The notes beneath the pieces are model-generated. The model was given only the letters and a program-made list of their open reading frames with translations, had not been told where the DNA came from and did not search any database. DNA of 64,000 nucleotides from positions 1,832,880 to 1,896,879 of the forward strand of contig CM074810.1 of the NCBI GenBank assembly GCA_037447605.1, written 5' to 3'. The stretch's first letter is position 1, and each line of letters opens with the position of its first letter. Positions 785 through 64,000 of this stretch are shown here, piece by piece. Both the position numbers and the translations under genes were made by a program. The stretch comes from Zygnema circumcarinatum SAG 698-1b. Its lineage: Eukaryota > Plantae > Zygnematophyceae.

Positions 785-9316
<8,532 letters not shown>

Positions 9317-25734: not shown

Positions 25735-28256
25735 GGAGACTATGTGACGCGGCAAGCGACTCACGGATCGAAAAAGTAAAAATGTTGGCAATTTGGCTCA
25801 TGGCTAGTTTATAGTTCCCCATGCGAACCGTTGGCAGTGGCCGAGAGAATTTCCTGCAGGCTTAGCCAACCGTTGGTAATGATTTGGAACCATGGCTGCC
25901 ATTGCTGACAACCATTGGCAATCGTGTTTCTTTCTCTCTCTGATAGTGCCCCAACCTACAACCACTGATACAACAAAAGCTTCCAAAAATAGAATGAGAC
26001 GCTCTCCTTTTGGCGCCCACTGATAAAACCAAAAAACGAGCAAAAAGTTCGCAATGCTTCATCGCGGCCTAGTTACAAAGTACAACGTCATCTACGCAAA
26101 AATCAAACCGAATTTTTTTGGTCAGAGAGGAAGTGGGAGTGGGAGAGCATTGATTATGGCTGCATTAACCCCTCTCCCCCCCCCTCCCCCTCCCTGTAGC
26201 GGTTGCTACACCACCCACCATGGTGCTCCGCGCACCATGTGCCCAGCCGTACGGTCGTACTGTACAGCAAGCCAGCCATACAGTACGGTCCGTTTATCTC
26301 CGTACACGTGTACGGCTAGCGTCTGTCAGAACTGGCGGACGAGCAACAACCTCAGACGCGCGTCAGAGGCGATCCCATGCCACGTGGCGCCCCGCCAGTG
26401 GCTGGCCCTGCTCCCGGTCCCTTAGGATTCGACGGGGGGGGGGAGCGGAGAGGCATTGGCGAGCTCTTAATATTAGAGTTCGCTGGAAACGAGCATCACA
26501 TGAGAGTCAAAGAGAGAGCGCTAGAACAAGAGGCAAGGGGCCTCTTGCTACTCCGTTAACTCGTTCTCCTTCACACTGCAAGCTTTCCTCGACTTCCTCT
26601 CATAAGCCTCTCCTTTCGAAGTGCTTCCCTTGTAATTTTTACGGGATCTTGGAGATTGCAAAATTCTTGCAAAAATAGTTAATCGAGTTTCATCCCTAAA
26701 GAAGTGAAAGTGATCGTTTGACCATTAGGCTTTCTTGCCTTTCCGCTGATAACAGCAAAGAGGAATCTGCAAGGGTAAGAGAGTACTTCGAGGTGATTCT
26801 ATGCACACCAAGTTTGTCGTTTTTTCAAGCATGCATATGCTAGCCTTTAATGCTAATTCCTCAACATTTAATAAGTCTTTTTGAAGGAATTTTCTTTGCT
26901 ATCATAAATGATATAAAACAATGATTATGAGCTTTATTTGATGAATGCAGAGTAACAAAGGTGTGAATCTATTGAGAGGAAAAGCGGCATGTCTTTTGAA
27001 GGTATGGATGTCTTCTTTATGTTTTTTGATCTCATATTCTTTTAAAAACTCACACAAATATTCAAGTATTTATTCCCTTATATTTTTCTCTTTAAGGCTT
27101 TTTTTTTTCCTCTCTTTAAGATTGGCTTAGGCTTTTCGTTTTCGTGATTCATGAAGGCTTGAAAGGAGGTACAAAGTCTGCTTGTAAGCTAAATGATGTA
27201 ATCTAAAGTAAGGGAAGGCTTGAAATGTTGGATGCGAAAGACTTTAAACTGCCCTAAAAAAAGGAGAATATAGTAAAGTTAACTCCTGTTTGCGCTTTAG
27301 TCCTATCTACATTGTTGCATCTTTCTTTAATGTACAACGTAAATTCAAGATTAGGTTAGGGTTCAGAGTGAGGGTTTAGGTTTAAGAGCTAGCATATGGA
27401 TGCTTAAAGAAACGATAAACTTGATGTGCATAAAATCACCTCAAAGTGTTCTTGTGCCTTTACAGATTCTTCTTTGTTGTTATCAACAGAAAGGCAAGAA
27501 TGCCTAATAGTCAAACGATCACCTTCTCCGGGGATGAAGCTCAGTTAGTTACTTTTGTAGCAACTTTGTAACCTTCCAACATAACAAATGCAATAAAAAT
27601 TGCAAGAGATGCGCTCTAAAGGGAGAAGGGAGGGGCTTATGAGAGAAAGTCGAGGAAGGTTTGCAGTGGGAAAGAGAACGAGTTAACGCTGACCAGGTGA
27701 GTGAAGAATTGCATCTTTGTTGACTTTTCAGCAGTTGGGGAAGGGAGGGGGGGAGGGGGAGGGGGAGGGGGAGGAGGAGGAGGAGGAGGAGGAGGAGGGG
27801 GAGGGGGAGGGAAGGGGAGGGGTTAATGCAGCCATAATCAATACTCTCCCACTCCCACTTCCTCTCTGACCAAAAAAATTCGGTTTGTTTTTTGCGCAGA
27901 TAACGTTGTACTTTGTAACAAGGCCGCGATGAAGCATTGCGAACTTTTTGCTCGTTTTTTGGTTTTATCAGTGGGCGCCAAAAGGAGAGCGTCTCATTCT
28001 ATTTTTGGAAGCTTTTGTTGTATCAGTGGTTGTAGGTTGGGGCACTATTAGAGAGAGAAAAAAACACGATTGCCAATGGTTGTCAAAAATGGCAGCCATG
28101 GTTCCAAACCATTACCAACAGTTAGCTAAGCTTGTAGGAACTTCTCTCGGCCACTGCTAACGTTTTGCATAGGAAACTGAAAACTAGCCATGAACCAAAT
28201 TGGCAACTTTTTTTCTTTTTTGGCCCGTGTCTCGCTTGCCCCATAGAGTAGTTTCC
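25735..28256. repeat. Large nested inverted repeat (fold-back): outer arms ~25735-26190 / ~27800-28256, inner arms ~26545-26850 / ~27380-27690
   Basis: Outer arms are near-identical reverse complements (the same pseudo-ORFs appear on opposite strands in the ORF track). Inner arms are recognisable but more diverged. Confidence 0.85.
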
Positions 28257-37890: not shown

Positions 37891-44963
<7,073 letters not shown>

Positions 44964-59877: not shown

Positions 59878-60732
59878 TCTTCTCCTCTCGTCTCTCTCTC
59901 TCTCACTATCACTCTCTATCACCCTCTCCTCCTTCCCGCTCCCACACTCCCCTCGACTCCTCGTCCCTGTGATAATGCCCCTCTCCCACCGTCGCTCTAC
60001 CCCCCTTGAGTCTGTCCCTCTCCCTCTATCCCTCTCTCCCTCGTTGTCCCGCTCTGTCTATTAAGGCGCCCGGCGAGCAATTTGCGGGCGGGCCGCCAGT
60101 GGGCGGGCGCCAGCTGGCGCGCCCTCAGGCCCCGCCGCGCGGCCGACGTCACGCCGATCAAGCGCGGCTGCCGGCGCCGACCCGTGACGTGACAAATCGT
60201 GACGTGACGCAACATGACATGGGTAGGATGGGACGTACGTATCGCGACCAGATCGAACGTCGTGTGACGTGATAGTACGGCCGGGTGCCAGAGGAGATGA
60301 AGATTCAGGAGCGGGTGACGGGCGGGCGCACCTGGCACGTGCGGGGGAAAACGTTTTGAAACGTGCCCGGAAAGAATTTCGAGGCGTTGATTGGTGGAAA
60401 ATGGCACGGACAGGCGAGTTTGGCCTTCTGGAAAATGTTTCTCCTGACCGGCTTGGCTGTTGTCGGCACCCGTTGTCGTTTTGAGGCTTCAATAATGTTC
60501 GTACGACGATGATTCTTCTGAATCGGCACTTGAAGATCTGATGACAGTTGTCAATTTTGTCTTTTGTTTAGGGCTGATAGTTCTCGTTGGAAATGAGCGA
60601 GCTGGCAGCGACCGGAAGTTCGACTTTCACCACAGGGCTGCCAGCTGGCGATGCGACAAGCGTTGCCTCTGCCGGCCGCTTGCCCTATTATTCGACAGCT
60701 GTCTGTCGCAATTGTTCGTACAGAAAGTCGTA

Positions 60733-63700
60733 CAGTGGGGGGTCCTCGTATTTACCACCCCAAGGAGTGCGCCCTCAATATTTTCGCCCCAATTTTGCCG
60801 AAACCACTTTTTTGTACGGTAACTTGTGTTAGCCGTACTGTCCGTATTGTTCGTACTATCTGTATTAGCCGTTACGAGCTTACGCAAAACGCACCTAATC
60901 TCCCCGCTCGTTCCGCCGTAAGAGGCGCTCGCTCTTCTCCCCGTCTTCTTGACTTCGATACGATACGATGCGATACGATATGTTCAATACGATACGAAAC
61001 TCCCCGATACGGTACTATCCGTACTAGCCGTACGAGCTGTAGTAGCCGTTACGGGTTCGCATTTAAACTCTCCGAATTTTCCCGCCCTTGCCGCCGCGAG
61101 AGGCGCTCGCTCCTCTCCTCTTCTTCTTGGCTTTGGCTTTGTCTTACTGCTGCAAGCTCATCAACACACACACAAACACACACAGTACACACACACACAC
61201 ACAGATCACACAGTACATTCACCATCAAAAGAAGGCGGCACGATCTCTTTTATGCGCTTATACCATGGAGGAGGAAAATCCAACAGTGAAGGAGGCAGCA
61301 CCACCACCACCACCAAGCACCGCCGCGGAGGTGCTGAGGGAGATACGAACGCTCCTGCCACCTGGAAGCGACACTCGATGTCGAACACCTGAGGCTGCGC
61401 TGGTTTACATTCGTAATCTTCTCTCTACTTCATCTCGTCATCGATTTGAAGTGTACAACCCTCCAGGTGATGGTCACTGTGTCCTACGGTGCGTGGTAGC
61501 TTCCCAATTCGGGTTTGAGAGGAGCAAAGACACGGACACTATTTGGGAATTGAGGTCAAAAATCAGCGAAGCTCTTTGTGCCAATGTGGAGTCGTTCCTT
61601 GATGATGGAAGCTTAGACATCATGTTGCTGGAGATAGATCTGTCTTTGGTTATTGATAACTTAGACGCGGACGAGAAGAAAATGTTATGGGGCTTATATT
61701 GTGACGAGTTCAAGGAGCAGTACCCGGACCACCAACCTCTGTATGCAGGCCATGCATCACTTCTTGCCATTAAGGACTTCATTTTCCCAGAGAAGAGGAT
61801 AGTGTTTGTGAGTACACAGATTAAAGGCGGTCAATCAGAAGATTCTTCATATCTTATTGGCTCTACAATGGTAGTGGCAGATGAATCAGAGTTGGCTGAT
61901 GACTGTAATCTAGTACTTTTACTTTATATAGACTCCATTCAGCATGCGTGTCTTATCTATGAGGTGACGACTGACGAGAATGGTGGAGCAGTCGAGCCAC
62001 AAAGCACTTCTCATCAAGAACAAACGAAGACTGTCCCTCAAACTCTTCCAGGCATTTGGTCATATAGTGCGAAGAGCACCTTCTTCAATGGCACCATCAG
62101 ACGTCGGAGAGAAAGGAAGGCGAAGGTGGTGCTTTCACATGAGATGAAGCTGGGCCTTCTTAACGATATCAGCAGATATGGTGTGTCAACTCTCTCTGTC
62201 GCAAAGAAGTACAATGTCACTCGACGCACTGTGCAGAATATGTTGAAGCGTAAAGACAAGATCATCGAAGCAACTCTGAATCCGAGAACGACAAAACGCA
62301 AACACATTCTTGTGAAGCTGAAGTTTCCTGCCCTTGATGCGTTGGTCCAAGCATTTGTCCAGCAACTCCGTGATCAAGGGTTCCCTATCACTTCCCAAAT
62401 TATTAGAGACTTTGCGCTTGTAATGGCTACAAACATGGGGATTAGCGAGGATGAATTCAAAGCTAGTGAGCGATGGGCTAGGAAATTTTCTGAAAGAATG
62501 GGTTTGTGCTCGAGAAATCTTCACGGAGAAGCTGCTTCAGCATTGGTGCACGATGTGTCTGGCCCAATAAAGGATCTAAGGAAACGTTTGGAAGGATATC
62601 CTTTGGAGAATATATACAATATGGACGAAACAGGGTTATTTTACCGGTTGCTTCCCAAGAAAACGTACGTTACAATGCGTGAGGATAGAAAAACTATCAG
62701 AGGAACAAAGCAGATGAGGTCCAAGGATAGGATATCTTTATACTGTGCGACTAATGCGACTGGTACTCACAAAATACCGCTCGGTGTAATCGGCAAATCA
62801 AAGAATCCAACAGTGTTTGGTAAAGGGAAGGAGGCTATCTTACGCGATTTGGGCTTGGCCTATTTTAGCCAGGCAAATGCGTGGTCAGATGGTTCTACTA
62901 TGACAAGGTGGCTTCGAGAGGTCTTCCTTCCGGCTACGAAGACAAAGAAAAAGAGCGGCAGGATAGCACTTTTACTAGACAACTGTGGTCCTCACAATAT
63001 GAAAGCAAAGGGCGAGAAGACCATAACGTCGAGCGATAGCCTGTCGTGTGAAAAGCTCGCCTCCGTGGAGAATGTCGATATTCTTATGCCACCTCCAAAT
63101 GTGACATCCCTTCATCAACCAATGGACCAAGGAGTAATCTCCATGACAAAGAAGAACTATCGATATCGTTTACTGATGGAGTGGAGCAAGCTATTCATGG
63201 ATCGAAAGCTGTTGGCTGCGCTCTCCAAAGGGAAGAAGAAAGGATCCAGGGGCCTTTGTGAAGGTGCTCAGCCTCATTTGCTGGATGCTTTGAGCATTCT
63301 TTCTGCCGTTTGGAGAGATTCTGTTACTACAGAGGCTATTGCTAGGTGTTGGATCAAGGCAGACATCCTTCCAGCTTCCTACAATGCTTCATACAATGAT
63401 GACGGCAACAAGGCAAACCCAGTCGAAGATAGCACAGAGGAGATAGTCAATGAGGTTGAAGAAGTGCAAAACTATGAAGAGGAGAAGGATATCGTGGAGC
63501 AACTGTGTTCAGTCTTTGCGGACATCGACTTGGCCTTCGGTGGATCTACTGTGGACTCGCTTGTGTCTCAGGGTCTTGACGAAGATGTCATTAACTGCAT
63601 GGCGTCCATAAAGTCAGCTGAGTCTATTGAGAAGCTATTGCATTCATGGGTGACGATTGAAGACAACCAAGATGTAAGAGAGGCGATCGTGGAAGACTTT

Positions 63701-64000
63701 GTCGGAGACTTAGAGCGGCAAGCACTCAAGAACTTACCATCGCAGGACCACGAGAATGATGCACAGAATCAAGAGCAACAATCAATGCTCAATGGCAACG
63801 AGGAAGAAGAGGAGGAAGGTGAAGAACTAAACGAAAAAGGAAGCGACCTCCAACATCAAACAGGCTCTTTTATTGCCGCCGCCAATGCCACTGAGCAGCT
63901 TCAACTTCCTGACTTGGAGGAGGCTCTCTCTACCCTGAACGATTTTGATACCATGCTGAACAACATGGGAGGTCACGGGTCGAAGGCAATGCTTCATCTT
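60733..64000 (+). mobile_element. pogo/Tigger-type DNA transposon (left end; runs out of the window)
   Basis: TA|CAGTGGGGGGTCCTCGTATTTACC at 60731-60756 fits the pogo TA target plus CAG(T)..CCTCG terminus. Subterminal repeats and a full transposase ORF follow. Confidence 0.85.
61265..64000 (+). CDS. OTU-like protease - CENP-B-type HTH - DDE_1 (DD48D) pogo transposase fusion, 3' partial (>=912 aa)
   Basis: Hand translation from accATGG at 61265 finds no stop to the window end. OTU-like PPGDGHCVLRCV (C72) and LLYIDSIQH (H227); HTHs VLSHEMKLGLL..SVAKKYNVTRRTVQNMLK and FKASERWARKF..LHGEAAS; catalytic NMDETG (D454), LLLDN (D572), QPMDQGVI (D621); acidic C-terminal tail. Confidence 0.9.
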   Translation, partial: MEEENPTVKEAAPPPPPSTAAEVLREIRTLLPPGSDTRCRTPEAALVYIRNLLSTSSRHRFEVYNPPGDGHCVLRCVVASQFGFERSKDTDTIWELRSKISEALCANVESFLDDGSLDIMLLEIDLSLVIDNLDADEKKMLWGLYCDEFKEQYPDHQPLYAGHASLLAIKDFIFPEKRIVFVSTQIKGGQSEDSSYLIGSTMVVADESELADDCNLVLLLYIDSIQHACLIYEVTTDENGGAVEPQSTSHQEQTKTVPQTLPGIWSYSAKSTFFNGTIRRRRERKAKVVLSHEMKLGLLNDISRYGVSTLSVAKKYNVTRRTVQNMLKRKDKIIEATLNPRTTKRKHILVKLKFPALDALVQAFVQQLRDQGFPITSQIIRDFALVMATNMGISEDEFKASERWARKFSERMGLCSRNLHGEAASALVHDVSGPIKDLRKRLEGYPLENIYNMDETGLFYRLLPKKTYVTMREDRKTIRGTKQMRSKDRISLYCATNATGTHKIPLGVIGKSKNPTVFGKGKEAILRDLGLAYFSQANAWSDGSTMTRWLREVFLPATKTKKKSGRIALLLDNCGPHNMKAKGEKTITSSDSLSCEKLASVENVDILMPPPNVTSLHQPMDQGVISMTKKNYRYRLLMEWSKLFMDRKLLAALSKGKKKGSRGLCEGAQPHLLDALSILSAVWRDSVTTEAIARCWIKADILPASYNASYNDDGNKANPVEDSTEEIVNEVEEVQNYEEEKDIVEQLCSVFADIDLAFGGSTVDSLVSQGLDEDVINCMASIKSAESIEKLLHSWVTIEDNQDVREAIVEDFVGDLERQALKNLPSQDHENDAQNQEQQSMLNGNEEEEEEGEELNEKGSDLQHQTGSFIAAANATEQLQLPDLEEALSTLNDFDTMLNNMGGHGSKAMLHL

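Follow-up and report, generated by a model that had tools for sequence, protein, structure and literature searches.

The end of the window (the whole analysed stretch of 64,000 nucleotides from Zygnema circumcarinatum SAG 698-1b) contains the left part of a pogo-type DNA transposon, whose transposase is preceded in the same reading frame by an OTU-like cysteine protease domain. According to the interpretation preferred here, to which a probability of roughly 0.5 is assigned, this is an intact member of a small and recently amplified pogo family, and its divergent N-terminal OTU domain would serve in cis as an active deubiquitinase with Cys72 and His227 as catalytic residues.

Reading frame and transposase domains

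The protein is encoded by one long reading frame, which had been proposed in the initial annotation and was borne out when the frame was read again. It is absent from the list of open reading frames because the frame runs off the window. The following features belong to the frame as a whole and to its transposase part:

61265-64000, + strand: stop-free open reading frame of at least 912 codons, continuing beyond the window end
62165-62263, + strand: first helix-turn-helix (HTH) motif, CENP-B_N-like, residues ~301-333 (weak Pfam matches)
62324-62515, + strand: second HTH motif, HTH_Tnp_Tc5, residues 354-417 (Pfam; 1-base deletion at 62383 in sibling copies)
62624-63352, + strand: DDD catalytic domain with D454 (62624), D572 (62978) and D621 (63125) (Pfam DDE_1 over residues 487-696)
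63362-64000, + strand: acidic C-terminal region, cut off by the window end (translation of the frame; comparison with the relative P0001)

The ATG at 61265 lies in the context ACC-ATG-G, and the nearest in-frame stop codon upstream of it is found at 61064-61066. Over the N-terminal 295 codons, which precede the HTH motifs, none of 20,000 shuffled sequences was free of stops, and the two remaining frames contain 14 and 20 stops there. Two HTH motifs and a DDE_1 domain with all three aspartates had been claimed from the letters alone, and Pfam matched the domains (DDE_1, E=6.7e-30; HTH_Tnp_Tc5, E=2.7e-12), with CENP-B_N as a weak match (residues 308-333, E=0.039). The relative P0001 possesses 265 amino acids beyond its own DDE_1 domain.

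The assignment to pogo agrees with the presence of DDE_1 in 120 of the 120 matches listed, and in a tree calculated without a non-pogo outgroup the transposase falls inside a clade of 20 rows (support 96/95). The catalytic triad has the spacing DD48D, whereas DD32D was found in the 10 close relatives measured. This spacing had been overlooked at first, as had the ambiguous register of the histidine loop described below.

Identity of the N-terminal domain

The N-terminal part contains the following features:

61325-61429, + strand: N-terminal segment, residues 21-55, outside the canonical OTU core (conserved in the metagenomic protein P0121)
61433-61966, + strand: OTU-like domain, residues ~57-234 (ESM Atlas; own OTU profile)
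61469-61480, + strand: Cys loop D69-G70-H71-C72 (aligned with D-G-x-C of the natural OTU proteins, which were chosen by this motif; kept in P0121)
61940-61951, + strand: His loop Q226-H227-A228-C229, register ambiguous (alignment to natural His loops)

The OTU-like domain comprises, in this order, the DGHC loop, an LR helix, a YAG box, an I-V-F-V strand, an LLY strand and the His loop. D69 (61469), C72 (61478), H227 (61943) and C229 are located exactly where the first reading had placed them. A flexible-looking linker (residues ~236-285) connects the domain with the HTH motifs.

Curated resources did not recognize the domain: neither a Pfam match at E<=1 nor a PDB sequence match was obtained. 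Two other approaches point to OTU. In the ESM Atlas, residues 45-245 led to OTU clusters at 0.93 (23 of 30 matches), and P0121 likewise to OTU clusters at 0.90-0.91 (30 of 30 named matches). For the second approach, natural OTU proteins were gathered by motif from viral and metagenomic contigs and combined to a 25-sequence profile, from which eight isolate loci, probably from animal viruses, were excluded. When ten profile members were compared with Pfam, OTU was the best match above the cut-off for seven, two matched weakly and one gave no match. Against this profile the domain scored 22.8 bits over residues 57-225. Shuffle controls were run because the OTU set had been chosen by motif; the best motif-preserving shuffle reached 14.3 bits, and 0 of 1,000 attained the score of the domain. 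With the motif masked, the domain still exceeded every shuffle (4.5 versus 4.2 for the best; 0 of 1,000), by a thin margin. The hhalign comparison with the same profile gave 90.6% over 156 columns, and conserved OTU columns are occupied by R97 (the arginine of the LR helix), Y160 (the W/Y box) and L219 (the leucine of the last strand), as well as by the strands of the domain. A weak match to the OTU profile in the metagenomic locus L066 was rejected, as it covers a segment of 38 residues without the Cys motif.

The comparison with OTU families that had been proposed as a check thus failed with Pfam and succeeded with the own profile and hhalign. In the same way, the in-frame fusion of an OTU-like domain held as a statement on sequence likeness, but not the geometry of Cys72 and His227: the AlphaFold models, calculated for the sequence alone or with two sequences and no usable alignment, had pLDDT values of 41 and 33, and fold searches with them were uninformative. 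Judged from the sequence, residues ~57-234 very probably adopt an OTU fold. That the domain is no OTU at all, or that the frame is a domesticated single-copy host gene, would suit the missing curated-profile and structural matches. It is hardly to be expected in view of the two independent lines of evidence from ESM Atlas and OTU profile, and the TA-flanked terminus, the several copies and the MITE ends held in common (see below) argue against a host gene.

Candidate catalytic histidine

The Cys loop matches that of natural OTU proteins, but the catalytic histidine is less secure than first supposed. The loop was compared with 16 natural OTU His loops. When the loop is matched without gaps, the His column is taken by Q226 and the aromatic column by H227, and L219 falls on the position -7 that is common in these loops. 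If the His column is excluded from scoring, the register with Q226 is better (0.39 versus -3.5 for H227); if it is included, the H227 register is better (4.5 versus 0.39). MAFFT placed H227 on the aromatic column in two of three modes and left it unaligned in the third. In the H227 register, position +1 is Ala instead of an aromatic residue and position +2 is Cys instead of Asp/Asn; an Asp/Asn at +2 is absent in both registers. The initial annotation had named the Cys at +2 as a caveat, which is correct but incomplete, since His+1 is Ala and Q226 may occupy the His column. For H227 to act as the catalyst, one residue must have been inserted into the loop and both usual followers lost; loop length does vary among the natural OTUs listed.

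Due to this ambiguity, an inactive OTU has to be taken seriously as an alternative to the active enzyme. Such a protein would have kept the fold with Gln226 in place of the catalytic His. It would bind ubiquitin or a partner but leave it uncut, and might in this way anchor the transposase to ubiquitinated chromatin or shield its own ubiquitin chains. The position of Q226, H227 and L219 in the 16 loops and the lack of Asp/Asn at +2 in either register would fit, as would the fact that the domain nonetheless looks conserved. Dead OTUs usually lack the Cys. Here, D-G-H-C is intact and part of the most conserved block in the 48%-identical protein P0121, the H227 register wins once the His column is counted, and a longer loop is compatible with the variable length in the natural OTUs listed. 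A binding function without cleavage is therefore possible but rather doubtful, and a catalytically active OTU domain is slightly favoured.

An active protease might also have a target other than ubiquitin and either cleave its own protein at the linker or strip a ubiquitin-like modifier. Some viral papain-like and OTU proteases cleave themselves and also remove ubiquitin-like modifiers. The flexible-looking linker between the domains and the atypical His loop could be read in this way; however, the nearest clusters consist of ordinary OTU proteins (PF02338) and no cleavage motif was identified, which makes such a target very unlikely.

Relatives of the domain and of the transposase

Among 1.84 billion representatives, P0121 is the only relative of the N-terminal part. 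This metagenomic protein, known as a protein alone, is 48% identical over residues 9-187 and retains DGHC; the most identical block (residues 61-75, 11 of 15) lies over the Cys loop. A length-filtered protein search with residues 50-240 and their alignment revealed no homologue besides P0121, and a search for related loci in metagenome, viral and prokaryote contigs gave no match. P0121 itself had no Pfam match at E<=0.5. Its tail was considered as a match to the His loop and discarded as a chance similarity, because 85% of shuffles score as well. Within the genome, diverged contigs match by at least 85% at the Cys loop, among other places (depth 357 versus ~100 in the read run X4).

The closest relatives of the transposase do not carry the domain. 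None of the 120 best showed PF02338, an N-terminus with D-G-x-C or a score with either of the two profiles used, none of nine related loci inspected has an OTU upstream of the transposase, and P0001-P0006 begin at the HTH. This is in accordance with the earlier statement that canonical pogo transposases consist of HTH and DDD without a protease. Since the domain is absent from the 120 closest transposases, the fusion is lineage-specific and dispensable for pogo transposition generally.

Left end, copies and putative partner elements

The noncoding part upstream of the frame contains the left end of the element:

60731-60732, no strand assigned: TA target site of the left end (start of an X15 contig at 60731; loose ends before it; X1 flank contig)
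60733-60760, + strand: left terminus of pogo type, CAGTGG...CTCG (starts of related elements; rise in depth; the right end lies outside the window)
60733-61160, + strand: left sub-terminal region, apparently common to a very abundant MITE family (read depth)

A pogo-type terminus about 530 bp upstream of the frame had been suggested, and a terminus in which TA is followed by CAGT indeed begins at 60733, 532 bp 5' of the frame, where depth jumps and loose ends occur at 60731. Four public read runs (X1, X4, X7 and X15, the last being RNA by guess only) were compared with positions 60300-64000. The first base of an X15 contig is 60731 and loose ends precede this position; therefore, both the TA at 60731-60732 and the element end at 60733 are genuine. 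In X1, the flank contig stops 25 nt within the element. Starts of the kind TA|CAGTAG and TA|CAGTGG were also detected at the shared boundaries of the metagenomic loci L059/L060 and L064/L065. The sub-terminal region contains two direct repeats of ~120 bp (60835-60955 and 61012-61133; 77% alike).

Read depth, which is a rough guide only, amounted to 17.7 (X1) and 8-13 (X4) in the flank, to thousands to tens of thousands over ~60730-61160, and to 77-102 over the reading frame, which is 4-13 times the flank. These values imply that the coding part is present several times and that the left end belongs to a very large family, whose other members we infer to be MITEs.

The copies are near-identical. 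Collapsed contigs with 6-7 differences cover 61610-62632 (X1, depth 77) and 61610-62743 (X4, depth 102), and because single contigs span the junction between OTU and HTH, the junction is a family trait and not an accident of one copy. Other copies retaining the fusion, a check suggested beforehand, were thus present. One base is missing at 62383 in contigs of X1, X4 and X7, a frameshift that would shorten the protein to 385 residues. Hence several copies keep the OTU-HTH junction and most are frameshifted, while the window copy is intact so far. Four small X15 contigs (depth 2-3) carry the alleles of the window copy at 13 discriminating sites and lack the deletion at 62383, which separately supports the intact allele. 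They also hint that the window copy is transcribed, although X15 is regarded as RNA by guess only.

Among the differences between copies, 19 of 32 listed coding differences are synonymous (~28% expected). In the catalytic domain the count is 10 of 12, and in the OTU core, where weighting of transitions gives p of about 0.02-0.03, it is 5 of 7. The list is small, has been filtered and combines near copies with diverged ones, so that it is suggestive only.

The OTU part might be a mere passenger, i.e. a fragment without any role that was captured in frame and whose source was, for instance, a Helitron or host gene. Close relatives transpose without an OTU, near-identical copies would have it in common anyway, and in Helitrons the OTU domains are regarded as captured and non-essential by the authors of HELIANO. 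Nevertheless, this is unlikely: the 295 codons are free of stops and similar in composition to the transposase, synonymous differences are in excess in the OTU core, diverged contigs of the same genome match over the Cys loop, and the 48%-identical P0121 exists, known as a protein alone. In addition, GC3 is 0.46 in the OTU part and 0.48 in the transposase and the CpG level is also matched, which argues against a recent capture.

The element is almost certainly part of a mobile family. The view that it is autonomous and not domesticated stood with regard to mobility and copy number, given the TA-flanked left end and the copies; an autonomous element is graded as likely only, because the stop codon and the right TIR lie beyond the window end.

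Proposed role of the OTU domain

In pogo elements, the two HTH motifs recognize the TIRs, and excision and insertion at TA are carried out by the DDD domain. Presumably, the transposase of the present lineage acquired a divergent OTU cysteine-protease domain at its N-terminus, which was then retained. The window copy or a twin would be the source of transposase for the frameshifted siblings and for the MITEs that share the left end. In the preferred interpretation, the OTU would be an active Cys72/His227 deubiquitinase with a His loop one residue longer, tethered in cis to the transposase. Its most likely task would be to deubiquitinate either the transposase or transpososome, or else chromatin and proteins of DNA repair where the cuts are made; this would limit degradation or steer repair, the substrate being a guess. 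The initial annotation had offered stabilization of the transposase itself, deubiquitination of histones and self-cleavage as candidate mechanisms.

A more far-reaching version can be offered tentatively. Here, a hitherto undescribed and possibly still active pogo lineage would evade the ubiquitin control of its host by means of a functional deubiquitinase whose His loop is non-canonical. It would also drive a very large MITE family, and the frameshifted siblings, which are commoner, might produce a 385-residue OTU-HTH protein that regulates transposition.

Deubiquitinating or SUMO-removing proteases are found repeatedly in transposons (Ginger1, Mutator and Helitron elements), for which a role has been proposed in the papers cited below, and an independent OTU fusion in pogo would carry this convergence into the IS630-Tc1-mariner group. 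Moreover, pogo is a simple system with a single reading frame for which cell-based transposition assays exist, e.g. for Passer (PMC9976928). Together with close relatives without the domain and an intact-looking copy, this makes the element a good test case for transposon deubiquitinases.

Comparison with known systems

The transposase part resembles pogoR/Tigger-type elements (PMC7386202, Gao et al. 2020) in its CENP-B_N-like and HTH_Tnp_Tc5 motifs, the DDE_1 domain with a DDD triad and the TA target. Published pogo transposases have lengths of 300-977 amino acids and spacings of DD29-59D/E (PMC7386202), and both the length so far and DD48D lie inside these ranges. Unlike the pogoR/Tigger-type, the element described here has ~240 extra N-terminal residues with the OTU-like domain. 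The terms 'OTU' and 'protease' are absent from two pogo papers (PMC7386202, PMC7325037), and in the literature covered, which is incomplete, no report of an OTU fused to pogo or mariner was found.

The OTU of Helitrons and the Ulp1 of MULEs had been named as precedents, which is correct, but the closest precedent, Ginger1, had been omitted. Ginger1 transposases of animal hosts carry an in-frame C-terminal OTU or Ulp1 domain, and it was proposed that removal of ubiquitin or SUMO aids transposition or repair (PMC2836005, Bao et al. 2010). Both systems combine a cut-and-paste transposase with an in-frame OTU, and the proposals on deubiquitination are similar, so that the fusion is less surprising. 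In contrast to the element from Zygnema, Ginger1 has a transposase like the integrase of Gypsy and a C-terminal OTU that is canonical for Pfam, and it occurs in animals; membership in Ginger1 is ruled out by the pogo DDE_1 transposase and the N-terminal OTU. Dada transposons were also considered as OTU carriers, which was not supported by the paper on them.

Helitrons and Helentrons acquired an OTU on more than one occasion, and it lies 5' of their transposase domain (PMC11417382). The 5' position of the OTU is the same; however, these are rolling-circle elements with RepHel and not TIR elements, and their OTU is often fragmented. Mutator elements with Ulp1, as far as they are cited in PMC2836005, are likewise TIR transposons with a cysteine protease that strips off a ubiquitin-like modifier, but in that citation the protease belongs to family C48 and the transposase to another superfamily.

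Extra domains on pogo transposases occur in POGK, POGZ and CENPB (PMC7386202), N-terminally in POGK and POGZ. These are fixed host genes without TIRs that carry KRAB or zinc fingers, whereas the element in the window is mobile and multi-copy and has a domain of protease fold. An OTU on a transposase is thus already known from Ginger1 and Helitrons, and pogo appears to be a new carrier.

The left end of the element and its sibling copies

The left end of the OTU-pogo element is apparently shared with a presumed MITE family whose read depth, a rough guide only, exceeds that of the flank over 1,000-fold. This end comprises the following features:

60733-61160, left end of the element, 428 bp
within 60733-61160, two sub-terminal direct repeats, ~120 bp each

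Six GTAC cores occur in these 428 bp, compared to 2.6 per kb window-wide. In the whole window, CGTAC was counted 101 times, where 22 were expected from shuffles; CG-TA-C is also the setting of the element's TA target.

In read contigs, most sibling copies showed a 1-nt deletion at 62383. Their predicted product has 385 aa and consists of the OTU-like domain, the first HTH and half of the second HTH; it is possible that it acts as a repressor or as a chromatin-tethered OTU. A +1 variant at 63238 was also found in read contigs of the run X7.

Three read contigs (X1 record 3, X4 record 19 and X15 record 12) are ~88-90% alike to the element over 61473-61602 and 61366-61465 only, and these restricted sequence matches suggest that the same OTU-like domain is carried by at least one diverged family.

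Other features of the window

25735-28256, fold-back element, arms of 461 nt, 90% complementary and 1,600 nt apart
4791-8225, near-perfect tandem duplication, 1.7 kb, copies split by a 10-N gap
38663-41370, near-perfect tandem duplication, 1.3 kb, copies split by a 10-N gap

The fold-back element ends with GGAGAC/GGAAAC, and no obvious target duplication was detected at it. Both tandem duplications are probably assembly artefacts. None of the 12 N gaps of the window lies inside the OTU-pogo element.

Comparison with pogo relatives

Seven pogo relatives (P0013, P0015, P0030, P0038, P0041, P0047 and P0054) possess 130-250 extra N-terminal residues, in which neither an OTU nor a clear Pfam domain was identified. 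In the transposase described here, a 16-residue insertion lies between the second and third catalytic Asp (62978-63127), and collapsed contigs of the element's family cover this insertion gap-free. The catalytic spacing is DD48D, against DD32D in the ten close pogo relatives that were measured.
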